Below are positions 1 to 24,697 of a DNA stretch of 24,697 nucleotides, piece after piece; position 1 is the stretch's first letter, and the number at the start of each line of letters is the position of its first letter. The DNA comes from Bugula neritina. Its lineage: Eukaryota; Animalia; Bryozoa. The position numbers and the translations under genes are program-made. The notes under the pieces are model-generated. The model ran no database searches, was not told the origin of the DNA, and saw only the letters and a list, made by a program, of their open reading frames with translations. Location: the NCBI GenBank assembly GCA_964035545.1, contig CAXIUT010000099.1, forward strand, positions 1 to 24,697, written 5' to 3'.

Positions 1-93
1 CCCAACCCCAACCCCAACCCCAACCCCAACCCCAACCCCAACCCCAACCCAACCCAACCCCAACCCCAACCCCAACCCCAACCCCAACCCCCC
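1..93. repeat. Left telomere, (CCCCAA)n
   Basis: Tandem CCCCAA with a few CCCAA variants at the window start; this is the Tetrahymena-type ciliate telomere repeat. Confidence 0.98.
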
Positions 94-178
94 TAAATGA
101 TAGCCGATAATATTCTTAAATTAATATTGTTTATTATTCATGATAATTATTAGTAAAATGGATAATGGGATGAATCAA

Positions 179-322
179 TCATGCACATATTCCTTGTTTG
201 TTTATCATACCATGAGGACATTGCTGGACACAGGCATCAGCTGTCCTTAATCTATTGGGACAGCTTGCGAAACAGAATGAGTTGTAGAAGAAGTTTTCTT
301 TAGACTCATTGCTCCAGTTCAT
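179..322 (-). pseudogene. Relic copy 1 of the 3' end of the Cys-rich gene (7419-12257)
   Basis: About 105-298 aligns closely with 7350-7537 (codons for ...CFASCP...CVQQCPHGMINKQGICA-TGA plus 3' flank); no full-length gene upstream. Confidence 0.85.
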
Positions 323-461
323 ATGTAGTCTATCGATATGTTTTATTCTTTGATTTTTAAGTGGATTTCCTCTTGTTGTAAAGTATTTGAGGTAGTGAAA
401 GGATTTTTGGCTGAGAATTGGAGCTGCCTTTTGTTTCTAGACTATGCCTTGTCATGTTTTA

Positions 462-923
462 TGTTTTTCTTCAGTTGTGATATATTTTACCATCGATTAT
501 TTGTAGTTTATCATGTGAAAATATCATGATGTCTTGGCTCTCCTTAGGAGTCTAACAAGTTGTAAATTAAACTTGATTCTTTTTATTGAGACAGGTAGTA
601 GTCAATGCGATCATTTTGACTCTGCTATCATGAATAGATTCTATTGAAGATGATGGAACGTGTCAGCCTTTCAAGGAAATCAAATAATATCAAGTACTTT
701 GAGCTTTATATCTGAGCTTTATTTCATAAAAAATCAAATTTTCTATTTCTAAAGTGTTTAGTTTTCTATAGTTTAAATTTACTAGTTAAATGTGGTTTTC
801 TAAAACTCAGCGATTAGAAATTATAAATCGAATCGTTATTTAAATAGAACATAATTTAAATGTTAAAGTTTCTCTTCCCTCTTCTTATCAGCTTGTTCGT
901 GGTAAGCTACTGTCAATCCACTT
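462..923 (+). repeat. Duplicated upstream region plus signal-peptide codons (copy A; copy B at 3533-3994)
   Basis: Appears identical by eye to 3533-3994 at offset 3071, ending just after the codons for MLKFLFPLLISLFVVSYCQST. Confidence 0.9.
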
Positions 924-3107
924 CCCTTCCCAGTATTTATCTAATAAGTTCCTACTTTCATTCAAATATGCTTGCAGAAAAGGAATCCCTCTAAGCTCAT
1001 GCAAGGCTCAACTCATTTGGAATGATCAAGTAGTCTCATCAATTAGCCCCAGTGACCACAAGATTCACAACTATAAGGTCAGGCTTTACGCTTAAATAGG
1101 ACCTAACAAACTCCAATTCTCTGGATCAGGGAAAAGTGATAGCTACGGTCTCATCATCGACAATGTTAAGATGATCAGAACTGGAACCAAAGAAGATATT
1201 GTAGTCAACGGAGACTTCTAAAAGCCAAGAGTTGGAAAAGGATGGAAAATCTTCAATAAAATTCCTGGATGGAAAGGAAAAGGAATTGAGGTTGGATGGG
1301 GAAAAATATACAATAATGGATGGAATAGTCAAGTAGTCGAACTTGATGGAAACAAAAATTATGCCATCACTCAACTTTGGAATTTTGATGATGATTATAA
1401 AATTGTCAGTTCTGGGTCTCTTGATTCTTCGAACCATCGTCTCAATCACAACCTTAATCGCCTGGAACACTGCCATCACCTGGAAGCCCTCCATCAAACT
1501 CAATATTGTCTGGCCCTCTTTAGAAAAAATTCAAACTTACTTTCCAATATGCTTGTAGAAGCGGTATTTCTTTAAACATCTGCAAAGGAAAAGTCATCTG
1601 GAATGATGAAATTATGGATATCAATCCAACTAACAAATTTGTTAAAACCTATTCAGTATGGGTTGATGTCAAACCAGGATAAAATTATCTCCTATTCAGA
1701 GGAGCAAGAGGTTCTAAAATATAAGGTCTCATGATTGGTCATGTTTAGTTAGTCAGAAAAGGAGAAATAGACAATATTGTTAAAAATGGAAATTTCAAAA
1801 GGCCAAATATTGGACAGGGTTAATTAATCTTTGATACAATACCTGGGTGGACCGGAACTAAAGTCGAGCTTACATGGGGAAAACGATACAATAGTAGATG
1901 GAACGGACAAGTAGTAAAACTCGATGGAAAAAAACAATACTTCATCTCTCAACATTGGAATTTTGATAAAGACTTTAATGAAATCAGTAGCAACCCTCTT
2001 AATCCTCCTCTTCCATCACCTTCATCACCTTAATCACCTTAGTCACCTTAATCACCTTCATCACCTTAATCACCTTAATTACCTTAATTACCTTCATCAC
2101 CTTAATCACCTTAATTACCTTAATTACCTTAATCACCTTAATCACCTTAGTCACCTTCATCGCCTTCATCACCTTAATCACCTTAATCACCTTCATCACC
2201 TTAATTACCTTAGTCACTTTAGTCACCTTAATCACCTTAATCTCCTTAATCACCTTCATCACCTTCATCACCTTCATCACCTTAGTCACCTTCATCACCT
2301 TAGTCACCTTCATCACCTTAATCTCCTTAATCGCCTTAATCTCCTTCATCACCTTAGTCACCTTCATCACCTTAGTCACCTTCATCACCTTAGTCACCTT
2401 CATCACCTTCATCACCTTAATCACCTTAATCTCCTTAATCACCTTAATCTCCTTAATCACCTTCATCGCCTTAATCACCTTAATTACCTTAGTCACCTTA
2501 ATTACCTTAATCACCTTAATTACCTTCATCACCTTAATCACCTTAATCTCCTTAGTCACCTTAATCTCCTTAATCTCCTTAGTCACCTTAGTCACCTTAA
2601 TCTCCTTAATCACCTTAATCACCTTCCACCCTTTCGAATAAATTCAAACTTACTTTCAAATATGCTTGCAGAATTGCTATTCCTTTTAACTCATGCCAAG
2701 GAAAAGTCACTTGGAATGGTCAAGCTATGTTTATCAATCCAACTAGCCATTAAATTCAAAAATACTAAGCATAAGTTGATGCCAAGTAAGGACAAAATTC
2801 TCTGAAATTCTAAGGAGCTGGACTTAGTGATAGCTGTGGTCTCATTATTGACAATGTTCGGCTGGTCAGATAAGGATGCAACAAAAATATTGTTGTCAAC
2901 GGAAACTTTGAGGATCCGTATGTCGGAAGAGATTGGAAACTCTTCAATAACATTCCGGGATGGAGTGGACAAGAAATATAAGTTGGATGGGGACAGATAT
3001 ACAATAGCGGATGGGGATAGAGAAATCAAGTAATAGAACTCGATGGAAACCATAATTATGCCATGACTCAACTTTGGAATTTCGATTCCTCTTATCGCCT
3101 AATATGA
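860..3107 (+). CDS. Secreted protein with 3 DUF642/galactose-binding-like domains and an (S-P-E/S)n linker; two 1-nt frameshifts
   Basis: Signal peptide MLKFLFPLLISLFVVSYC. Domains read FLLSFKYACRKG...WND...GSGKSDSYGLIIDNVK...IVVNGDF(E)KP...IPGW...IEVGWG...VVELDGN...TQLWNFD. TGA at 3105-3107. Compared with the paralogue at 3931, one base is missing near 929-932 and one near 1432-1435 (read error or young pseudogene). Confidence 0.8.
2016..2624 (+). repeat. Coding 9-bp minisatellite TCACCT(TAA/TCA/TAG), about 68 units, encoding Ser-Pro-Glu/Ser
   Basis: 9-nt period is visible and in frame with the flanking domains as S-P-x. The His/Leu and Lys/Val ORFs in the track are off-frame readings. Confidence 0.95.
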
Positions 3108-3230
3108 AAGCTTGAATGATATCTAAACTATTTTAAATCTAATATTATCATAAAAACTATCATTTTCCAGGCATAAAAATTGTTTTATTATTCATGATAA
3201 TATTAGTAAAATAGATAATGGATGAATCAA

Positions 3231-3393
3231 TCATGCACATATTCCTTGTTTGTTTATCATACCGTGAGGACATTGCTGGATACAAGCATCAGCTGTCCTC
3301 AATCCATTGGGACAGCTTGCGATACAGAATGAGTTGTGGAAGAAGTTTCCTTTAGACTCATTGCTCCAATCCTGGCCATAAGAATAGTTCATA
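3231..3393 (-). pseudogene. Relic copy 2 of the 3' end of the Cys-rich gene, with internal deletion
   Basis: 3178-3349 matches 7366-7538. The adjacent 3354-3391 (minus strand gaactattcttatggccaggattggagcaatgagtct) resembles ~7965-8001 (gaactgtccctatggccaggacttgagcaatggagtct). Confidence 0.85.
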
Positions 3394-3930
3394 TGTAGTC
3401 TATCAATATGTTTTATTCTTTGATTTTTACGTGGAGTTTCTCTTGTTGTAAAGTATTTGAAGTAGTAAAAGGGTTTTTGATACGAGAATTGGAGTTGCCT
3501 TTTGTTTCTAGACTATGCCTTGTCATGTTTTTTGTTTTTCTTCAGTTGTGATATATTTTACCATCGATTATTTGTAGTTTATCATGTGAAAATATCATGA
3601 TGTCTTGGCTCTCCTTAGGAGTCTAACAAGTTGTAAATTAAACTTGATTCTTTTTATTGAGACAGGTAGTAGTCAATGCGATCATTTTGACTCTGCTATC
3701 ATGAATAGATTCTATTGAAGATGATGGAACGTGTCAGCCTTTCAAGGAAATCAAATAATATCAAGTACTTTGAGCTTTATATCTGAGCTTTATTTCATAA
3801 AAAATCAAATTTTCTATTTCTAAAGTGTTTAGTTTTCTATAGTTTAAATTTACTAGTTAAATGTGGTTTTCTAAAACTCAGCGATTAGAAATTATAAATC
3901 GAATCGTTATTTAAATAGAACATAATTTAA

Positions 3931-6900
3931 ATGTTAAAGTTTCTCTTCCCTCTTCTTATCAGCTTGTTCGTGGTAAGCTACTGTCAATCCACTTGCTCTC
4001 CTTAATATCTGTCTGATGAGTTCCTGCTTTCATTTGATTATGCATGCAGAAAAGGAATCCCTCTAGACTCATGTAAGACCCAAATACTTTGGAATGGTCA
4101 AGTAGTCTCATCAATTAGCCCTCATGATCATAATATTCACACTTATTATGTCTGGCTTTACGCTGAGATAGGACCAAACAAACTTCAATTCTCTGGATCA
4201 GGGAAAAGTGATAGTTATGGTCTCACTATTGACAACGTTAAAATGATAAGATATGGAACCTAAGAAGATATAATAGTCAACGGAGACTTCTAAAAGCCAT
4301 GTGTTGGAAAAAGACAGAAAATCCTCAATAACATTCCTGGATGGAGTGGAAAAGGAATCTAAGTTGGATGGGGAAAACTATACAATAGTGGATGGAATAG
4401 TCAAGTAGTAGAACTTGATGGAAACAAAAATTATGTCCTGACTCAACTTTGGAACTTTGATGATGACTTCAACATCATCAATAGCTGCCTTCTTCATCCT
4501 TCAGTACCATCACCACATCCATAGCCTCTATTGCCTCCATCATCTCCATCATCATCTTTATCATCTCCATCATCTCCATCGCCTTCATCTTCTCTATCGC
4601 CTCCATCATCTTTATCACTTCCATAGCCTCCATCATCTCCATCGCCTTCATCTTCTCTATCGCCTCCATCATCTTCATCACTTCCATAGCCTCCATCATC
4701 TCCATAGTCTCTATAGCCTCCATCATCTCCATCACTTCCATAGCCTCCATCATCTCCCCCCCTTTAGAAATAATTCAAACTTACTTTGAATTACAATTGC
4801 AAAAGTGGTGTTCTTTATAACTTATGCAAAGGAAAAGTCATTTGGAATGGTAAAACTATGTATATCAACCCGACTAACCACCATATTCAGACCTTCTCAG
4901 CATGGGTTGACGCAAAGTAAGGACAAAATTATCTTCAATTAAGAGGAGCTAGAGGTAGTGAAAATTAAGGTCTCATTATTGACAATGTTAAGGTGGTCAG
5001 AAAAGGATGTGTTGACAATATTGTTGAGAATGGAAACTTCTAAAAACCAAGTGTTGGACGTAATTGGAAAATCTTTAGTAGCATTCCTGGCTGGAGTGGA
5101 ACTGGAGTCGAGATTGGATGGGGAAAAATATACAATGCTAAATGGAATAGTCAAGTAGCCAAACTCGATGGAAAGAAAAAATATGTCCTCACTCAAGTTT
5201 GGAACTTCGATAAAAACTTCAACCAAATCAAAAGCTCTCTTCATCCTTCACCTTCTCCAATACCTGCCCTATCAACCAGCACTCTTGAGAAAAAGTTTTT
5301 ACTGACTTTGAATTACAATTGCAAAAGTGGTGTTCTTTATAACTTATGCAAAGGAAAAGTCATTTGGAATGGTAAAACTATGCATATCAACCCGACTAAC
5401 CACCATATTCAGACCTTCTCAGCATGGGTTGACGCAAAGTAAGGACAAAATTATCTCTAATTAAGAGGAGCTAAAGGTTGCTAGAATGAAGGGCTCGTTA
5501 TTGACAATGTTAAGGTGGTCAGAAAAGGAGATATAGACAATATTGTTGAGAATGGAAACTTCTAAAAACCAAGTGTGGGACGTAATTGGAAAATCTTTAG
5601 TAGCATTCCTGGCTGGAGTGGGAATGGAGTCGAGATTGGATGGGGAAAAATATACAATGCTAAATGGAATAGTCAAGTAGCCAAACTCGATGGAAAGAAA
5701 AAATATGTCCTCACTCAAGTTTGGAACTTCGATAAAAACTTCAACTAAATCAAAAGCTGCTCTCTTCATCCTTCACCTTCTCCATTACCTGCCCTACCAA
5801 CCAGCACTCTTGAGAAAAAGTTTTTACTGACTTTGAATTACAATTGCAAAAGTGGTGTTCTTTATAACTTATGCAAAGGAAAAGTCATTTGGAATGGTAA
5901 AACTATGTATATCAACCCGACTAACCACCATATTCAGACCTTCTCAGCATGGGTTGACGCAAAGTAAGGACAAAATTATCTTCAATTAAGAGGAGCTAGA
6001 GGTAGTGAAAATTAAGGTCTCATTATTGACAATGTCAAGGTGGTCAGAAAAGGATGTGTTGACAATATTGTTGAGAATGGAAACTTCTAAAAACCAAGTG
6101 TTGGACGTAATTGGAAAATCTTTAGTAGCATTCCTGGCTGGAGTGGAACTGGAGTCGAGATTGGATGGGGAAAAATATACAATGCTAAATGGAATAGTCA
6201 AGTAGCCAAACTCGATGGAAAGAAAAAATATGTCCTCACTCAAGTTTGGAACTTCGATAAAAACTTCAACTAAATCAAAAGCTGCTCTCTTCATCCTTCA
6301 CCTTCTCCATTACCTGCCCTACCAACCAGCACTCTTGAGAAAAAGTTTTTACTGACTTTGAATTACAATTGCAAAAGTGGTGTTCTTTATAACTTATGCA
6401 AAGGAAAAGTCATTTGGAATGGTAAAACTATGCATATCAACCCGACTAACCACCATATTCAGACCTTCTCAGCATGGGTTGACGCAAAGTAAGGACAAAA
6501 TTATCTCTAATTAAGAGGAGCTAAAGGTTGCTAGAATGAAGGGCTCGTTATTGACAATGTTAAGGTGGTCAGAAAAGGAGATATAGACAATATTGTTGAG
6601 AATGGAAACTTCTAAAAACCAAGTGTGGGACGTAATTGGAAAATCTTTAGTAGCATTCCTGGCTGGAGTGGAACTGGAGTCGAGATTGGATGGGGAAAAA
6701 TATACAATGCTAAATGGAATAGTCAAGTAGCCAAACTCGATGGAAAGAAAAAATATGTCCTCACTCAAGTTTGGAACTTCGATAAAAACTTCAACTAAAT
6801 CAAAAGCTGCTCTCTTCATCCTTCACCTTCTCCATTACCTGCCCTACCAACCAGCACTCTTGAGAAAAAGTTTTTACTGACTTTGAATTACAATTGCAAA

Positions 6901-7341
6901 AGTGGTGTTCTTTATAACTTATGCAAAGGAAAAGTCATTTGGAATGGTAAAACTATGCATATCAACCCGACTAACCACCATATTCAGACCTTCTCAGCAT
7001 GGGTTGACGCAAAGTAAGGACAAAATTATCTCTAATTAAGAGGAGCTAAAGGTTGCTAGAATGAAGGGCTCGTTATTGACAATGTTAAGGTGGTCAGAAA
7101 AGGAGATATAGACAATATTGTTGAGAATGGAAACTTCTAAAAACCAAGTGTGGGACGTAATTGGAAAATCTTTAGTAGCATTCCTGGCTGGAGTGGAACT
7201 GGAGTCGAGATTGGATGGGGAAAAATATACAATGCTAAATGGAATAGTCAAGTAGCCAAACTCGATGGAAAGAAAAATCAATCAATCAAACAAAGCTGGA
7301 AATTCAATTACTCTTACCACCTTTTATAAAAACTTCAATGA
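3931..7341 (+). CDS. Secreted 1136-aa protein with 6 tandem DUF642/galactose-binding-like domains and a Pro/Ser linker
   Basis: One frame from ATG 3931 to TGA 7339-7341 when TAA/TAG are read through. Signal peptide, domain 1, P/S linker (~4498-4761), then five near-identical domains. No TM or GPI-like tail. Confidence 0.9.
4498..4761 (+). repeat. Coding Pro/Ser-rich low-complexity linker (CCTCCATCATCT-based)
   Basis: Degenerate repeats translating as PPSSPSPSSSLSPPSS..., in frame with the 3931 gene. Confidence 0.85.
4783..7277 (+). repeat. Five tandem 522-525-bp coding repeats (175-aa domain plus linker)
   Basis: Anchor actttgaattacaattgc occurs at 4783, 5305, 5830, 6355 and 6880 (periods 522, 525, 525, 525). 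Confidence 0.97.
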
Positions 7342-7418
7342 TTGTCCAATAATATTTTAAATTAATATTGTTTTATTCTTCATGATAATATTAGTAAAAT
7401 AGATAATGGATGAATCAA

Positions 7419-10400
7419 TCATGCACATATTCCTTGTTTGTTTATCATACCGTGAGGACATTGCTGGACACAGGCATCAGCTGTCCTTAATCCATTGGGA
7501 CAGCTTGCGAAACAGAATGAGTTGTGGAAGAAGTTTCCAGGGCCACAAACTCTTTTGCATTGATTTCCATCTCTAAAAGTACCAATAGGACATTACTGGA
7601 CACATGCTCTGTTGTATGAATATTTCCCTGAAGGACAAGAAGTCACTCTTTGACATCCTCCGTTGATTGGCTCAAAAGAGTTATCGCAGACAATACAGAA
7701 AGATGAGCTGAAGCAGTTCATACAGTTTGGTGAGCAAGTTTTGCAGTGTCTTGAGTTGAAATCAGGGTAGTTACCAGTTGGACAGGCTCCTACGCACATA
7801 CCATCATAGATGAATTGATTAGAGTTGCAGACTGGACCACTAGGAGTATGACTTCTTCTGACACAACCTCCATAAGCGTTGGGAACATATCCGTTGAAAC
7901 ATCCTCCGTAGATACACATCTCTCCTTCGAAGAAGTAAAATCCTGGGTCACAGATATTGGCACAGACTCCATTGCTCAAGTCCTGGCCATAGGGACAGTT
8001 CACTTCTGAAATGCATTTCTTTGAAGCAGTATCAATAGAATATCCTGAAATGCATTTGGTGCATGAATGGATGCTACCTGAGCATTCAGCGCAGTTGGAG
8101 TCACAAGGTCTGCAGCTGCCATCGATGGAAGTAAAACCTGATCCACAGCTAGTTACACACTGACCTGAAGAAACAATTCCGGAAGAGCATTGGCAAACTC
8201 CATTGACTGGTCTGGCTCCTACTGGACATGAATGTTGACATTTTCCTTGGAAGTAGTAGAATCCACTGAGACAAGAAGTACAGGCTCCTGAACCATCGCA
8301 AGATGAGCAAGGATAAGGACAGTCAGCACAGATACCAGCTCTTGGTTTAATATTGGAGTTGGCACAAGAAGTACAGAAGTGTCTAGATGAACAGGTTGAG
8401 CAAGAAGAATCACAGGTGATACAAGATTTACTTTATCTATTGTAGAATTGATATCTGAGGCAACCTTTTTGACAGATTGAACCTGTTTTAACATAGCCAT
8501 CGGCACACTGAAGACAGTTTTGAGGAGTAATTTTGCAGCCATAACAACTTTCTGAGCAGGCGACACAGTGACCTTGGAAGGCAAATTCATTTTATCCACA
8601 TACAGTAGTACAAGAGCCGTTAATTGATACTGATCCATGAAGACAAGAGGTGCAATTGCTAGGTCCTCCTTCACAAGTGGTACATTGAATAGAACAAGGA
8701 GCACATTCAGTGACTGAAACTTTGTAGAAAGCATCGGGACAGGTATCAGTGCATGATGCATTTCTTCCAACTAATTGAAGAGAAATAGCAGGACATTGAG
8801 CCCAACATCCTCCTTGATAAAGAATTTGTCCATATGGACATGAGACACAGTTAGTAGATGAACCAAGGCAGGTAGCACATCTAAAGTCACAGATTCGACA
8901 GACGCCCTTTTCAGCATAAGTGCCATCAACGCATTTCAAGACACAACTTTGGTGATCGTAAGAAGTTTGAAGATATCCGAATCCATTCAGGCAGCTAGTG
9001 CAGTATGAAGGGTGATTAATGCATGTTTTACATGGTTTATTACATGGAGAGCAAACCCAGTTTCCTGAGGATTTATCACCAATGGTTCCAGATGGGCAGA
9101 CATTGTAGCAATTTCCTTTATACATGAAGAAGCCATCTTTACAGTAGTAGCAAATTTTATTTTGAGTGCATCTTTGGCAACCTTCTGAGCATCCTACACA
9201 AACAGATCCAACAGCAGTAAATCCATCATTGCAAGATGGTAGACAAGCTGATCCTTGGAGGAAAAGAGGACTGATACAACTAGTACAGTTAGTTGGTGAA
9301 CTACATTTTTAGCATCCACTGGGGCAAGGCAAGCAGTCTCCATTTGCAGCAACATAGTTTCTAGCTGAGCAAATACATTTGTTATCAGCTGTTTTGGTGT
9401 ATGAAGTTTTGCAAGTGGTACAGGTGTTGACATCGACACATTTGATACAGTTGGTTCCACAAGCAGCACAGTATCTAACTCCATTAGGTGAGACAGTGAA
9501 ATAAGTTTAAGCAGGGCAGATGCAAGATCCATTTCCACTAGGAGTAGATAAAGCAACGCATGAATCGCATTTGGTGGCTGAGGAGCAGATACTACAGCCA
9601 GTTGAACAAGGAACACAAGTATTGTTGGAATTTGCGTAATATCCAGGCATGCAGACGCAGATGCTTTCTGGAAGTTTGATGACTCTGTTTTTAGAGGAAA
9701 GACATTTGATGCAGAGTTTTAGGCCTTGCTAGCATTGAGAACAGAAGGGATCGGCATTGCAGTTTGATTGGATGCATGAACCGTCAGCTGTTGAGTAATA
9801 TCCTGGTTGACAGAGACAAGTTTGTTGTCCATTGCTGTCTACTCCAGAGACTCTATTTTTAGAGGCATCGCAAGAAGTGCAGAAATTGGGAGATGTAATA
9901 CATGTTTTACAATGAGGTTCACATAGTTAGCAAGTTTTAGTTTGGTTAGTGTGATAGATCTCATAATATCCATCCATACAGTTGCAGACTGTTCCTTTCA
10001 AAATTCTTTTAAGAGTAGAATTGCAACCAGTACAAGCTGACGAATTGGTGCAAGTTAAACATGTTTGAGAGCAAGTTGAACAGTTGGCAGCTCCAGTATC
10101 AAAGAATCCTGTGATGCAAGCACATCCTTGACTAAGATCTCTTCGAAGAGGATCAACACAGGCTGTGCAAGTAGCTGCTGGTGAGCTACAATTTTGACAT
10201 TAAGTGGGACATTGTTGACAAGTGGTTCCATTGACAAAGTATCCATTACCACAAGTGCATGATAAACTAACATTGTCATGATTAGCTCCAGTCACACAAG
10301 TGGTGCATTTAGCTGGATCACTTGGCAAGCAAATAGAACAGTAAAGAGCGCTACAAGGGAAGCATTGGAAGGTTTTAGTGGAATCAAGATAAAATCCACT

Positions 10401-12257
10401 TATACAAGTACAAGTGGCATTATTAGCATTGAAGGCAAGACCGGCTTTAGTGTCACAGACAACACAAACTGGAGGATTTTGTTGAACATCGAGACCAGTT
10501 CCAGCTGGACATGAAGTAGGGCAGCATCCAGTTGTTGGATCATAGGCTGCGTTGAATTGGAATAGACGAAGATAGGTCCAGAAACTTTGGTCTGCAGTTG
10601 TTGATCTAACATATGAGACGGTAATGACAGCAACAGCAGTAGTAGATCCAGCATTGATTCCTTTGAAAATACCAATTACTGAAGTTGTAGCTGTAGTTAG
10701 AGGAGTATAATTGATTTAATAAAGAACGAAGCCGTCAACTTCAAGTTTGATTTTATATTAATTATTGGCTGCCATTCTTGCAGTTCCTCCAATGGGATTA
10801 ACAGTATCAAAGTATCCGAATTAGAACTTGAGAGGAGCTCCAGCAGTTAATCCGACGAATGGGATTTAAGTTTTGAAGATGATGGTATCGTTATTGCCAT
10901 TATTAGCACCAAAATACATGAAGTTAAAGCTATTTGATGTCCCGACACCTCCAGGAACAATGATTGGAGCTGAGCTATCTTCAAGGATATATTGTTGATC
11001 TGATTTGGTAGGCACAGTGAAATAATTTTTTTTTCCGACTTGATCTATTCTAGTATTGCCAGAATTGCAAAGGTTATCAATGTTGACTGTGAAAATATCT
11101 GCAACGAAGAAGAAATCAGTAGGATTGGAGTTGGGAGTAGTGACTGTGAACTAATCGATTGAGTTAAGAGTGGCATTGACATGGATAGTTGTGCATGTTG
11201 TATTGGCGTTGATAGGAAGGATAAAACGAGTGATACCGTAAATAGCATAGCGGGCATCAGGAAGGTGATAGTAAAGTTGGTTGTATTAGGTTGCTGTAGT
11301 TCCTCTTTTGATGGGAATTCCTTCGTTGAATTTTTCAACAGTTGTGAAGATGTAGCTTGATGAATATAGTAAATTTGAGCCAGCAGGATATGTAGCAAGA
11401 ATGAGGTTAGAATCCATTCTTGAAATAACAAAAGCTACTTTGATGTATTCGATGGCTCCTCCAGGATTGTGAACGGCTACGTTAGGTCCATAGGGTGTAG
11501 CTGCTCTGGTGACAGTCACAGTATTCTCATTTAGAGCTGGATCTGGTGTCAAATTGGGTAGAACTCCAGCAGATAAATATTCAGTTGTAGTTCTGGCTGA
11601 ATTCCACATAAAACCCATAATATAGGCGTGGATTATTTATTGACCACTTCCACCAGCAGCAGTATTGGTAGCTGTAGTACCAGAAGTTGGGCAACCTGCT
11701 GAATCGAAGGCATAGTCAGGATCAGAATAAATGGAGCATGTAAGAGCAACTGGATTATTTTGATAGGCTGCACCGATGAGGTCAAGACCTGTTGGGGTAG
11801 TTGAGGGATTAGTTGCTTCAGCTACTGTAGCCCAGATATCAGAAAAGGCTCCGTTAAGGTTTCTGGAAACGACAATGTAGGTGAAGGAAACAAGGTTCCA
11901 AACGGTGATAGCTCCAGTGGATGGGTTTCTGAAATCGACAACGATTCTCATTCTTGTGTTTTGATTTTCATATGAAACTTTTTTGATGATGAGAGTATAA
12001 AAAGAGCTGCCACAGGCAGTTTGGAATCCAGAGAGTGCAAAACCATGACCCAAGACATCAACTGTTTAGAATGCGTTGAGAGTGAGATCTTGGTAGTAAT
12101 CTTTGTTGGCTCCATTGTTGTATGTATCAAGAGGATTGAGGTGGATGAGGCCGGTTGCCAGTTTTGGAATAAGGGAGGCGTTGTGGCATGTGTTTTTGAA
12201 GTTGGTTTGTCCGAAGGCAATGAGTACTAAAAGTGTAAAGAGGATGACACCTTTCAT
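7419..12257 (-). CDS. Secreted 1612-aa cysteine-rich protein (furin-like CxxC repeats) with a Cys-poor N-terminal region
   Basis: Track fragments 12066-12257, 11637-12053, 11286-11618, 8592-9125 and 7593-8003 share one frame and are joined by TAA/TAG read-through. Signal peptide MKGVILFTLLVLIAFG. CxxCxxxCxxC repeats run from about 10530 downward. Ends NKQGICA-TGA with no TM anchor. Confidence 0.92.
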
Positions 12258-12517
12258 ACCTTTGTTTAAAATCTTCTAAACGTCAATTTCTAATTCGACA
12301 TTAAAATAAACGACGGACGACAGAACCTTCAAAATTACATATAAATAAATAAAAAGCTATCAATAGTGTCCTTAATGCTTTAGAAGTACAATTTTTTAGA
12401 GAATAAATGAATACAGCTGTTTTTGAAACTTTTATTTTTGAGGAATAAAACTATTTAAGAAACGTTATTTGCAATATAAAATTAGATATAAATTTAATAC
12501 GGTCATAAAATATTCAT

Positions 12518-12593
12518 TTGGGGTTGGGGTTGGGGTTGGGGTTGGGTTGGGGTTGGGGTTGGGGTTGGGGTTGGGGTTGGGGTTGGGGTTGGG
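12518..12593. repeat. Internal telomeric tract (TTGGGG)n, right end of the first minichromosome
   Basis: 76 bp of TTGGGG oriented as a right-hand end, about 260 bp upstream of the Cys-rich gene ATG. Confidence 0.97.
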
Positions 12594-12906
12594 ATTTAAA
12601 AAGGGTAAATAACTGAAAAATATGCATTTTCAAGATGAGTATAATAAATATACGTTTTCATATAAATTCGTTAGAAAGCATCTTGATCATCTGCTAAAGA
12701 ATTGAATATAACTTTTTTGTTGAGATATATTTCAGTGAAAAAAGCTAAAGTTTTATTTATACTATTTTAGTTATTTTAACATATAATTAAATAAAATTAA
12801 CAAATGCCCTTATTATTGTTTAGTTAAACTATATTAAAATAATTTTTGGTAAAGAATATTTTTTACTTATTTATTGAAAAAGAACAGATAAATTCAATCA
12901 TACTTA

Positions 12907-13626
12907 TCATGCTTCTTCAATCTCCATATTATCTTCTTCGCTGATTTATGTATAAACCATTTCAAATTTTACCGAGTCAAATGCGATTGAGACTAACATT
13001 CCGATCAAAGTAAGAGCCAGAGTCCATTCAAGTAACTTACTTTTATCGCTATTGCTTTCATCCGTGTTGTCTTATGTCTTCATTGAGCTGTAGATAGCTT
13101 GAAGAAGCAAAAAAAACAGGAATAAATATTTCACATAGAGATTGATTCGACTAATAGCTTTAGTTTTATTGTACAAAATAGTGCAAATGACAGCATTATA
13201 GATTTATGCGACAAAAGTCAAGATAAAGAACCTACCTGCACAATAAACATGTATTTTTGTATTCATATGCCCTGTATCGATCGTGGCGGTGTTGACCATG
13301 AGAAAGAGAGCGCCCATGATTCCAATAACCAGTCCGACTTAAGGATGATACTGGCGAATGTGGAAACCATGCTAGATAGAAATCGTTCTCAGGCAGAAGT
13401 AGTTGACAAACCATCCCAATATTATCAGAGCTGCTCCTGTAATGGTGCTCAATCTGAAAGTTAGGAATTATGGATAGTGTTGGGCCACTATGCTGATGTA
13501 CTGGTGAGGGAAGGGTGGATCATGATGATAGTATTGAGATTGCCAGTAGATGATGGCCAGACTTAGAAGGGCAAATCCGCCTCCGATCAAGAGAAATATG
13601 CTCGCTGGAAAGGAACCTTTGAACAT
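12907..13626 (-). CDS. Frag1/DRAM/Sfk1-family (PGAP2/CWH43-N-like) multi-pass membrane protein, 239 aa
   Basis: MFKGSFPASIFLLIGGGFALLSLAIIYW...PHQYISIVAQHYP(E)FLTFR...IHVYCAGRFF...LLEWTLAL. Several hydrophobic segments; family-like YIS..YPE, H...A..F and EW motifs. ATG 13626, TGA 12907-12909. Confidence 0.7.
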
Positions 13627-13811
13627 TAGTTATGTAAATAGATATATTCAGATATTATCTGTGATTAAAATGATTAGTATTCTGATGAGATCATTTAAAA
13701 ATCTTTCTGGTAGTTCTGATAGTTCTGATAGATATATTTTGATATTGAAAATGAGCAGATCAATCAGATAACATAATCTGATAGTTATATTCATATTGAT
13801 AGAGGATTAAA

Positions 13812-15430
13812 ATGGACTACGATGCTCGTAAAGATTCTCTTCTTTCATAGCAAGAGTCATAGAAAGTTGAAATCTATCTTTCTTGTCGTAAAGTGGATGT
13901 TTAGGTTGTGACTGTTTAGGGGTTTTTGCAAGAAGCTAATAAGCCTCGTAAAAGTGTCTTCTATTCTAAACCTACTGCTGTACACAATTCAAGGGCTTAA
14001 TTCGCTAATTCTATCGTCCTAGAATACTTTTTTGAGTGTAACTCTGTATTGATAAAGATAGACAAAAACTTTTTTTCTAAGTTTTCGACACTTCTGGATC
14101 AGCACGTTACTCTGTGGGCAAAGTAGCGACTACTGTAGGTGAAATCTTTAACGGCCGTGAGAAAGGGATAGTTAAACAGATCGAGAACAATGGAACTGTT
14201 CGAGGATAGATGTTGCTTCGTTGTTAAAAAGTAGACAGAGGTACTCAAAGATATGTTTAATTCTTTTTGAGAACACGTAATTTAGATGTCGGGTCAACTT
14301 GTCTATGTTTTGGATAGAAATCTTCACAGTGGAAACTTTACAAGATAAAACAAGGACAAGAATATTTGTTATATGAAAGTGAGGTTCGAGAGGGTCAAAA
14401 CAACAGATATAATCACTTTAAGATCAATGAAAAGAGATTGTGTAATAATAACAATAAACAACCCAATATCATTAGATTTTTCAGTGGGACTTCTATGATA
14501 GCATAATCACGATTTGATTTGGCTACTTTACAGTAAGGTAAGCTGAGGTTAACTCTTACTAAAAATAATCAAGAAAAAGGACTTATCTTCTTTTAAAACT
14601 TTAAAGAATTTACTAAATTTGCTTTCACTGATTTCCTTTCTGCAGGCATGCAAATGGCTATGGTTCTATGCATTGATTTCACTGCTAGCAATGGAATACA
14701 AACAGCTTCTACCTCTCTGCATCATCATAGTGCTCATAAAAGGAGTCAATACGAGTAGGCTCTTCATGAAGTAAGCAACATTGTTCTTGATTATGATACT
14801 GACAAGTTAGTTCCTTGTTTTGGTTTTGGAGCTAAAGTCAACTTGCCATCTTTCAATACTTATAACAAAGTTCATCACTGCTTTCCTTTGAATGGATCGT
14901 AGACGAATCCTAACTTATTCCAGTTGGCAGGAATCTAAGAAGGATATCGAAAGTGTCTACCATATCTTCAGTTTTCAGGTCCTACCTTTTTTGCTCCTCT
15001 TCTTCGTGAAGCAATGTCAGTCTGTTAGAACATGAAATCAGAGCAGAAAGAGTATATGATTCTTCTAATTTTAACTGATGGAATTATCCACGATAAGTAG
15101 GAGGTCAAAGATCTGCTGGTCAAGTGTGGAAGGCTACCTTTAAGTATCATTATGATAGGTATTGGTAATAATTAGGATTGGAGTATTATGCATGAATTAG
15201 ATGACGATGATATGCAGATGACTGATTTTCAGGGCAATAAAACTATAAGAGACCTGGTCCAATTCGTTGAATTCCAAAAGTACAATAACAATGGAGTGTA
15301 ATTGGCTAGTCAGGTTCTTTATGAGTTGCCTCGTCAAGTGTAAGAGTACCATATGCTCAATAACATGGTTCCCTAGGTTTACAAAAACAATATGAGCGAT
15401 AGCTATGCCCAAAAAAACCATCTATATTGA
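13812..15430 (+). CDS. Copine (two C2 domains plus VWA), 532 aa, one 20-nt intron (14038-14057)
   Basis: Motifs EYFFE..QKLFF(E)VFD, CIDFTASNG, DYDTDKLVPCFGFGAK, FSGPTFFAP, LLILTDGIIHD, LPLSIIMIGIG and RDLVQFV. Removing the intron restores the frame. Confidence 0.93.
14038..14057 (+). other. 20-nt spliceosomal intron (copine)
   Basis: GTAACTCTGTATTGATAAAG; removal gives FE-YR-QKL, matching the copine FE..QKL spacing. Confidence 0.8.
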
Positions 15431-15473
15431 TTTAGATATCATTGTTATCAGTATAAGTGAAATATTTATGATA

Positions 15474-16055
15474 TCATTGTTAGGTAATGTTCGATTCTTC
15501 TATGTTTTCATATTGGTTTTCATTTTTATTGATGAGATATCTTCTTTGGGTTGATTGACTTTTTGAACGATTTTCTGGTGAGAATATTCTTTTTTTGTAA
15601 CGAAAGTTTCCTGATCTTCTCATAAAAATCTAACTTAATTCTTCATGTTTGTTATTTTTGTTTAGTATTTCGCTTTAAGATTTTCTTTTTGAGATGGAAA
15701 AGTTAAAACTTTTTCTCTAATGTGGTAACAATTCATATTTATCGATAACTTTCGAAGGAATAATACAGGATTTATTTCTAATGCCTCGACTACTTTGATT
15801 GCTCTAAGGTGTTTTGAATAAATTATCTTTGAGGTGTTTGTGGCCATTGATATTTCTTCTTTCATTGTATGGGTATTCTTTTTTCATAGAGTAGAGAAGA
15901 CCTTTTTGATGGATATGTTTTGATACTTTTTTGTTGGAGAAGAAATGACGGAGATTTGGGTCTTGTAGAGGGTTGTAGTAGGGTAAGGGAACTTCGTTTA
16001 TGTGATAGTTTGTTATGAAGGGTTTCTCGGGATGAGGTTGATAGTTTCTACGCAT
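15474..16055 (-). CDS. Hypothetical ~193-aa protein with a YNPLQDPNLRHFF...GL motif (ERICH3/FSIP2 N-terminus-like, possibly ciliary)
   Basis: Track ORF 15804-16055 continues through TAG/TAA to TGA 15474-15476. Motif resemblance is from memory and the C-terminal frame is less certain. Confidence 0.6.
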
Positions 16056-16219
16056 AATAAAATTATTCCAGTCTTTAAAATATAAATCTAGAATTATATT
16101 TTTTTGTGTTATTCTTGAAACTCATATTTTTAAGTAAAAATATTATGAAATATCAATCTGGAGAGCTTTAAATTTTTTAGATGAAATAATAAATAATAAA
16201 TAATAAATAATATAAAATA

Positions 16220-18013
16220 TCAAAATCTATTGACTTTTTCTAATGCCTTGGAACAAGAATTACTACTTTTTCTAAATTATTTATTTCCATTGATAGTTTG
16301 ATATAGTTTGACTTATTAAGGTTGTTATTAATAGCAAAAGCTACTTCTGATAAATTTTTGAGTTTTTGATTATTTTACTAATTTTTGACCATTTTTAGAT
16401 TCCACAGATTGATTTATAGTAAAATATTTATTAAAAGAACTCGATACTCTATGATTCTTTTCATTATCTTTATTTTGACCGAGTAAAGATCGATATCTAA
16501 GTTTTCCTTTGCTAGTTTTTTATTTTTATATCTATCTATAAGTTTTCGAATATCTGTTTATTCTATTTCTGCCAGTTTGTGCAGTTTCTAGAGTTCTGAA
16601 GTTAGTAGAAATAGATTTGAGTTATTTCTATTTATTTTATTCTTGATTATTTTATTATTTTTTATCAATTCTATGTGTTCTATTCCCATATCTGAAGCTA
16701 TCTGGATCCATCATATCCATAATCTACCCCATAGGTTTATCTTTGACCATTTGTTTGATTCTTGCGGTGTTGATATGTTTTCTTCTTTTCATTTACAAAT
16801 ATAGCTATCCAAAATTATTGGTATCGGTGATATGTTCGAGTATTTCGTCTTTGGGGGGAAGTCTGAATTTTATTAACCTTCTTGGTACTTCAGCATGATC
16901 TAATTACATTATCTATTGGATGTAGATGTTTCCGAGATCGTTCATGATCCATTTGATCTTTATATTTTAGATATATATTTTTGAAGTCATGTTCAAGTAA
17001 TGCACTATTTTGTAGGTCATTAGATCGACGTATTGTTGCGGATTGTTCAGCATCATATAGTGATCTAACTCCTAAATAGTATCGATATCGGTATACCCTT
17101 CCTCGTATTTGTGTAGTCCTCCTAGTAGAACCATGATATCGTTTTAAGCTCGTTAATCTAGCTAATTTTGAGGATTAGTCAAAGTGAGACTATATTTAGA
17201 ATAGTAGATCGCTTTGGTTTATAATTTATATTTTATGTAGGATTGGACATAGACTACTTAGTGCAATTTGTTGTTAGTCGACAGCATGAACATTTAGAAC
17301 TAAATTTGATTGAATAGTTGACAATTGCCATCGGTGTATTTGACTATGACAAAGGGTTACTTGCTATTCATTTTATGTTACTATATTTGTTGGATTTAGT
17401 ATTTTTGGTGTTTGTGGAGAATGTATCTTTTGAATTGTTTTTTATTTTTTTGTAAAATGCCTATATTATCCATTCCGTCGTGAAAATGGGTAGGAACGAA
17501 TTTGTCGAAGTAGTTCATGTGCATGTGATCGGGGTCGATGGCGTCGAGCATTTTCTAGTTGAAGAGGAGTTCTAGCATGTACTTGTATTCTTTTCTGTAG
17601 CGCAGCATGGTTGGATAAAGGGAGCGAAGAGGAGTAGTGCCTGATAGTTTTATTAGACGGCCGTCTTTTCGACTGCTTTGGAATGTTTATAGACTTTATC
17701 CTATTACGAATAGCAAATCTGGGAGGTTCATTTTTATGTTTTTGGCTCCACTGAGACACAAATTGTCTAGCAACTTTTTAAGCCATATTGTTGATGCTTT
17801 GCTTGTGACAGTGAAAAGATTGTGGTCTACTTGAGATTATATTTATATTTTCTATTCTTGGCAAAGTTTACAGGTACATGTGTCTTTATTAGTTAGGAAG
17901 TTTTTGGGGTCGATTGTGCTTTAGAGACCTTGAGTTGTAAAGAGGTTTGCTTATGTTGATTGTTGTGGGTGGGGGGAACTTGGATGTTTTCTGAAAGAGG
18001 AGTTGTTTTGCAT
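16220..18013 (-). CDS. Hypothetical protein, 597 aa
   Basis: TGA-free frame from ATG 18013 (MQNNSSFRKHPSSPH...) to TGA 16220-16222; no family recognised. Confidence 0.75.
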
Positions 18014-24579: not shown

Positions 24580-24697
24580 GGGGGGGTTGGGGTTGGGGTT
24601 GGGGTTGGGGTTGGGGTTGGGGTTGGGGTTGGGGTTGGGGTTGGGGTTGGGGTTGGGGTTGGGGGTTGGGGTTGGGGGTTGGGGGGTTGGGGTTGGG
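24580..24697. repeat. Right telomere, (TTGGGG)n
   Basis: Terminal TTGGGG array with some G-run length variation. Confidence 0.98.

Follow-up and report, generated by a model that had tools for sequence, protein, structure and literature searches.

Two neighboring genes at positions 860–3107 (gene 1) and 3931–7341 (gene 2) of the forward strand of contig CAXIUT010000099.1 (24,697 nt, from the Bugula neritina assembly GCA_964035545.1; this entire stretch is referred to as the window) encode proteins consisting of a signal peptide followed by three and six repeated units, respectively. The question raised by this locus is whether these units are galactose-binding-like domains in which the two halves have exchanged their places. 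An earlier note, made from the sequence of the window, had proposed that a DUF642/galactose-binding-like module in circularly permuted form is repeated in a secreted protein of a ciliate. DUF642 (PF04862) comprises galactose-binding-like proteins from the cell walls of seed plants as well as PEP-CTERM proteins of bacteria. Our results support this proposal: with a probability of about 85%, as judged from sequence comparisons and structure models, each unit is a self-sufficient DUF642/galactose-binding-like beta-sandwich of the carbohydrate-binding module (CBM) type, with the strands in a circularly permuted order. Five lines of evidence point in this direction, namely profile comparisons before and after swapping the halves, the Pfam matches of canonical vs. 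permuted units, predicted structures together with their PDB matches, language-model features, and the existence of single-unit genes. All reading frames were translated with table 30, that is, TGA is the only stop codon and TAA and TAG are read as sense codons (Glu).

The units were divided into a half A (NGxFE...PGW...ELD...TQLWNF) and a half B (FLLSF.YAC...G.SD..GLIIDNV). Half-domain profiles detected both halves in all nine units of the window, each with E values from 1e-25 to 1e-40 and always in the order B then A, which confirmed both the motifs and the reversed order that had been noticed before. The colinear order of DUF642, with the NGxFE half first and the IDNV half last, is followed in none of the nine units. 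The two types of junctions differ strongly. From B to A, there are exactly 5 residues between the profile ends in all nine units, whereas the gaps from A to B are of low complexity and vary tenfold in length (four of 21–22 residues, and one each of 39, 96, and 218 residues). The linkers are rich in Ser, Pro, and Leu, except for the 218-residue linker of gene 1, which consists of Ser-Pro-Glu. Also the proposed Cys pair near the start of the unit (C-x8-C) was found in 9/9 window units as well as in 18 of the 49 permuted units from the database, but in none of the 42 canonical relatives. The proposed boundaries of the module need small corrections. The B half indeed comes first, but the mature chain of gene 2 begins about 10 residues upstream of FLLSF, and the A half indeed comes last, but the approximately 7–10 residues after TQxWNF still belong to the last strand.

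Each unit was compared, in its native form and after an in silico swap of the halves, with a 153-position profile of canonical-order relatives. For every window unit, residues 2–77 of the native form matched profile positions 74–149 (42–70 bits), and residues 83–152 matched positions 2–73 (56–79 bits). The swap, which the earlier note had recommended, converted these two non-colinear matches into one colinear match that extended over profile positions 2/3–148 (106–157 bits). A profile of the permuted units gave the mirror result. A colinear alignment of a native unit with a known family, which had been named as the outcome that would speak against a permutation, was not obtained at the sequence level. 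The cut is located between canonical profile positions 73 and 74, at a hairpin turn (I.Q... / ..L.F.YA). The permuted chain starts at the usual second strand of the central hairpin (FLLSF.YA), passes the usual C-terminal strand (IDNV), runs via a short new junction into the usual N-terminal segment (NGxFE), and ends at the first strand of the central hairpin (TQLWNF).

For the identification of relatives, 1.84 billion representative sequences were searched with a 342-residue stretch of a paralogue that lacks TAA and TAG (contig C108, 44762–45787). This yielded 359 proteins at E ≤ 0.001 (cluster representatives); the phmmer E values for the matches of both halves to canonical DUF642-like proteins range from 1e-12 to 1e-98. 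The mapping of the halves, which was performed for the best 150 of these 359 proteins, revealed two architectures. In the permuted relatives, the signal peptide is followed by B-(3–12)-A, single or repeated (range of gaps in 52 database units), and in the canonical relatives by A-(2–10)-B, likewise single or repeated. The canonical group includes small proteins with the bacterial sorting signals PEP-CTERM or VPDSG-CTERM, and all proteins with bacterial sorting signals among the best 150 matches have the canonical order. When the consensus sequences of the permuted and canonical alignments are compared, the same motifs appear in opposite order, and the motifs are shared with DUF642 (NGxFE, PGW, E.G.G..YN, ELD, Q / L.F.YA.R, G.N.L.F.G.G.SD..G..IDNV), as are secretion and, according to the predictions described below, the beta-sandwich. 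Indeed, the DUF642 model PF04862 matched 20 of the 42 canonical-order relatives at E < 0.01 (best E value 4.5e-11), but none of the 50 permuted units. P0047 reached 31.4 bits, above the gathering cut-off of 27 bits, and the matches of P0108, P0139, and P0095 covered model positions 2–156 of 157. Both halves of the unit are homologous to the N- and C-terminal halves of DUF642 (42–79 bits each against the canonical profile), and in the language-model (ESM) feature space the unit adjoins DUF642 clusters at 0.95, with 176–179 shared features. These sequence data argue strongly for a transitive relation to DUF642. The window proteins differ from DUF642 in that the halves are reversed and the units stay below the Pfam threshold, and in that they are arrays of three to six units with mucin-like spacers in a ciliate that reads UAR as Glu.

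A further canonical DUF642 sequence is encoded on contig C300 (3483–3932, reverse strand; 38.8 bits, over the cut-off). It was not used as evidence for ciliates because the contig looks bacterial (46.5% GC, few in-frame UAR codons within the DUF642 frame) and probably stems from an associated bacterium in the assembly. A 666-residue permuted member with two units and Cys/Pro-rich regions on both sides is encoded in another organism (GCA_020050275.1, JAHZTE010025418.1), which has in-frame TAA/TAG codons in its aconitase gene.

The permuted single unit was modeled with AlphaFold2 using a 50-row alignment. The model of the unit alone had a mean predicted local distance difference test (pLDDT) value of 94.8 and a predicted template modeling (pTM) score of 0.90. 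The values for a canonical relative were very similar (94.8 and 0.89), and its strand list is a cyclic shift of that of the permuted unit. In both predicted models the fold is a galactose-binding-like beta-sandwich. A Foldseek search against the PDB at E ≤ 1e-3 resulted in 293 matches for the canonical relative, including CBM35, CBM4, Stig/HpiC1 cyclases, and the Fbs1 sugar-binding domain, but in none for the permuted model. With VIA-align, the canonical model had full-domain matches to CBM4, 35, 36, and 61 at Z scores of 11–14; the matching chains were 4bj0 (CBM4-2), 1ux7 and 7ay3 (CBM36), 3zm8 (CBM35), 9mui, 2dcj, 4itc, and 2e26. The permuted model matched the same chains only at Z scores of 4–5, and only residues 1 to about 80 superposed, in each case on the C-terminal half of the chain (4bj0 82–167, 1ux7 53–130, 3zm8 55–131). 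Likewise, DUF642 models of the ESM Atlas aligned only with residues 1–82 of the permuted unit.

The only full-length colinear match of the permuted model was the CBM60 chain 2xhh_A (Z 8.0, in a range of 7–8 that is common according to the tool). The alignment comprises 108 of the 119 residues, with model residues 4–154 on chain residues 1–119, at a root-mean-square deviation of 3.9 and 6% identity. Thus, at the structural level one known family does align colinearly with the unit. CBM60 is a bacterial calcium-dependent xylan binder that is appended to enzymes. Montanier et al. 2010 (J Biol Chem 285:31742; cited in PMC6852018) reportedly described it as a natural circular permutant of CBM36. 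According to the title of PDB entry 2xhh, CBM60 is a circular permutant with a link to CBM36. Because CBM60 is itself a circular permutant, the match is a precedent for the topology rather than a refutation of the permutation. Natural circular permutation within the beta-sandwich CBM superfamily is common to CBM60 and the units described here; among solved chains only CBM60 aligned colinearly with the whole modeled unit, at the Z score given above, and CBM36 aligned with one half only. In contrast to CBM60, to which the unit has no detectable sequence relation, the permuted and canonical forms are still similar in sequence and coexist in one genome. A man-made parallel is the engineered circularly permuted jellyroll 1,3-1,4-beta-glucanase (1cpn), which matches the unit at a Z score of 5.9. 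It illustrates that a jellyroll tolerates new termini, but is an enzyme of another superfamily.

Single permuted units also occur as separate genes. The gene on contig C48 (L037:4642-5166, reverse strand) encodes a signal peptide, B, and A, followed by TGA. In another organism, a contig of 68 kb carries P0103, likewise a single unit, with TGA TGA at its end. The same genome that contains the permuted-register arrays (C108, C48) also contains a canonical-register array. On contig C138, a giant secreted frame of more than 5000 codons (205–17311), with two frame breaks near 10.7–11.8 kb, carries about 15 canonical-order units that are 47–49% identical to the window units. Its period consists of A, 14 residues, B, and a linker of about 93 residues rich in Glu, Lys, Pro, and Ser; an A stands first in the array and a B last. 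One Cys precedes and another follows the linkers (RRVC...KSCAN), and the non-repeat end regions comprise about 1200 and about 750 residues. In an unrooted tree of half-normalized units, the C138 units branch within the permuted clade of the same genome, with values of 81–92 in the Shimodaira-Hasegawa-like approximate likelihood ratio test (SH-aLRT). This nesting is only suggestive because a single clade of all canonical-order units was not rejected in an approximately unbiased (AU) test (p 0.145). The permuted form likely originated by tandem duplication of a canonical domain and subsequent loss of the outer halves. A domain register that is fluid within arrays, so that C138 represents a permutation reversed by re-phasing and the arrays are intermediates of duplication and truncation, is a tentative idea that we consider possible but rather doubtful.

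Apparent permutation could also arise if canonical domains were formed across the linkers, with the A half contributed by one unit and the B half by the unit that follows it. The Ser/Pro stretches would then be giant loops, and the halves at the ends would remain orphans or pair with one another. The C138 protein does use A-short spacer-B, with an A at the start of the array and a B at its end, and some database arrays are short at both junctions (P0005: B-5-A-8-B-7-A), so that their register is formally ambiguous. However, the window has the constant 5-residue B-to-A junction (3–12 residues in the database units) and low-complexity A-to-B stretches of 21–218 residues, in every gene of the cluster B is the first half behind the signal peptide and A the final one, and genes encoding nothing but signal peptide, B, and A exist in the source genome and elsewhere. 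Since such single-unit permuted genes exist, the fold need not form across linkers, and in the model a single unit indeed folds alone. A fold across the linker, the second outcome that the earlier note had set against its own proposal, was not indicated at the sequence level, and we regard this explanation as unlikely. Even less credit is due to an assignment of the units to CBM60 or another permuted bacterial CBM family, without descent from DUF642. It has in its favor that 2xhh_A is the best full-length structural match. Yet the identity to CBM60 is 6%, no permuted unit matched Pfam CBM60 (PF16841) at E ≤ 0.01 (0/50), and both halves match canonical DUF642-like proteins, with the bit scores and phmmer E values given above; this assignment is very improbable.

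A different objection concerns the genes rather than the fold, namely that they are decaying repeats or pseudogenes without function. Gene 1 has the same build as gene 2, but contains two frame changes in the window copy. A two-gene segment of about 7.3 kb has been duplicated, window 18–7277 and C108:46507–53783 being 99.6% identical, and the gene 1 copy at C108:47.3–49.6 kb is intact, with a continuous frame of 797 codons. In comparison, the window copy lacks one C at 929 and one C at 1430; introns were rejected as a cause of the frame changes since the intact copy differs only by one C per site. In public contigs of runs X1, X2, and X4, the additional C is present at either site; at 1430, run X2 contains both forms, the one with the C accounting for 150 of 265 depth. 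Because the C108 copy and the public contigs carry the C, the frame breaks are an assembly error or a lesion limited to the window copy. Further features that could indicate decay are the lack of an RNA run and a TAA in unit 2 of gene 1 (1821–1823), which falls on a column with Trp in 35 of 48 relatives and also occurs there in two paralogues, so that this type of unit may be degenerate. The ratio of nonsynonymous to synonymous substitution rates (dN/dS) is about 1 for one pair of units, but for paralogous units it is mostly 0.23–0.5, by which measure the units are under purifying selection. Gene 2 is intact over 1136 codons, and the family has several hundred relatives (the 359 mentioned above). 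A loss of function is thus very unlikely.

Several points weigh against the interpretation as permuted domains. The structures are predictions, and they were modeled on a paralogue at C108:45.1–45.5 kb because every window unit contains TAA or TAG. The tool describes Z scores in the range of the 8.0 to CBM60 as common. A search of PDB sequences yielded no match, and Pfam scans gave nothing over threshold, neither for the stop-free pieces of the window nor for the 342-residue stop-free A-linker-B stretch of the paralogue in either order. The tie of the permuted units to DUF642 is therefore a transitive one at the sequence level. The best match in the Pfam scan, positions 2–18 of CBM_4_9 at an NGNFED motif, had an E value of 0.19 and was discarded as not significant. 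The C138 gene also uses the connection A-14 residues-B, and in long proteins halves may pair across linkers, the model being that of a single unit. Lastly, no RNA runs are on record, and in the runs that contain the locus, intergenic DNA is covered as well and there is no sign of splicing.

In spite of these points, permuted, self-sufficient domains remain the preferred interpretation, and the features of the two window genes are as follows. Gene 1 has the coding region 860–3104 and the stop codon TGA at 3105–3107. Its unit 1 extends from 943 to 1407 (B 943–1179, A 1195–1407), unit 2 from 1524 to 1982 (B 1524–1757, A 1773–1982), and unit 3 from 2637 to 3104 (B 2637–2870, A 2886–3104), directly followed by the stop codon. 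The 218-residue linker between units 2 and 3 contains a 9-bp tandem repeat in 68 copies (2015–2625), which encodes its Ser-Pro-Glu sequence. Gene 2 is a single open frame (3931–7338) with 24 in-frame TAA, 10 in-frame TAG, and no TGA before the stop codon TGA at 7339–7341. It starts with a typical signal peptide (MLKFLFPLLISLFVVSYCQS; 3931–3990), followed by TCSPEYLSDE, and its C-terminus is not hydrophobic. Unit 1 (4015–4479; B 4015–4251, A 4267–4479) is followed by the 96-residue linker rich in Ser, Pro, and Leu (4480–4767). Units 2 to 5 (4768–5226, 5290–5748, 5815–6273, and 6340–6798) are each represented by a pair of half-profile matches, and a short tail leads from unit 6 (6865–7323) to the stop codon. 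The copy of gene 2 on C108 (50281–54369) has two units more than gene 2 in the window. In a further gene on C108 (43196–46588), the last unit (46364–46588) stops after position 48 of the A-half profile, and the same frame continues through CCCCAA repeats that resemble telomeres and are translated as Pro-Asn.

The source cell of the DNA is, as the codon usage supports, a peritrich ciliate with a UAR = Glu code. In alignments with the database relatives, the TAA and TAG codons of the family units coincide most often with Glu (25% of the weight, compared with a background of about 5%) and also with Asp, including one column with Glu in 48 of 49 relatives and another with Asp in 44 of 49. Since the in-frame TAA and TAG codons fall on conserved Glu/Asp columns, UAR apparently encodes Glu. 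The C4A2 telomeres at the chromosome ends agree with table 30, the code that had been suggested for the translation. C4A2 repeats are present at positions 1–95 (forward strand), marking the left end of a piece of about 12.6 kb that is bounded by telomeres, and G4T2 tracts are present at 12518–12594, its right end, and at 24587–24677, where a second piece ends near 24.66 kb. Because positions 1–12594 have telomere tracts at both ends, the first 12.6 kb look like one macronuclear minichromosome. Contig C108 looks like several macronuclear minichromosomes strung together or like a carrier of internal telomere tracts.

What might these proteins do? The secretion signal, the predicted CBM-type fold, the mucin-like spacers, and the neighboring cysteine-rich gene fit a secreted multivalent carbohydrate-binding protein. 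The genes would encode secreted, non-anchored, lectin-like proteins with three to six sugar-binding modules that are joined by extended Ser/Pro(/Glu) spacers. Judged from fold and architecture, the modules may bind glycans, and their multiplicity would provide avidity; the ligand could be a polysaccharide from the extracellular matrix or stalk material of the cell itself, or from prey surfaces. The module itself may be of bacterial origin. Among plant DUF642 proteins, At3g08030 binds cellulose, and BDX and At5g11420 bind pectin methylesterase, in all three cases in vitro (PMC6651502). In a sessile peritrich, the window proteins are candidates for roles in the stalk, the matrix, or prey binding, and they are located on a piece of about 12.6 kb that is devoted to secreted repeat proteins.

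In the literature searched, we found no paper that joins DUF642 with circular permutation or with ciliates. Circular permutation in the CBM sandwich superfamily is known from CBM60/CBM36; the new aspect is a case in which both registers have stayed similar in sequence. Natural permutations whose two topologies remain recognizably similar in sequence and occur side by side in one genome and in tandem arrays are rare, and the duplication-then-truncation model can be examined directly in these arrays. The results also reveal a blind spot of current searches: a family with hundreds of members, and with a fold that is among the commonest sugar-binding folds, was missed by both Pfam and Foldseek through its strand order alone.

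The cysteine-rich gene (7422–12359, reverse strand), which shares its piece of DNA with the two DUF642-like genes, has 1646 codons and encodes furin-like/VSP-like repeats. Remnants of this gene are present at 100–340 and 3177–3400. As copies of its 3' end stand after each DUF642-like gene, the cysteine-rich gene is part of the duplication unit.

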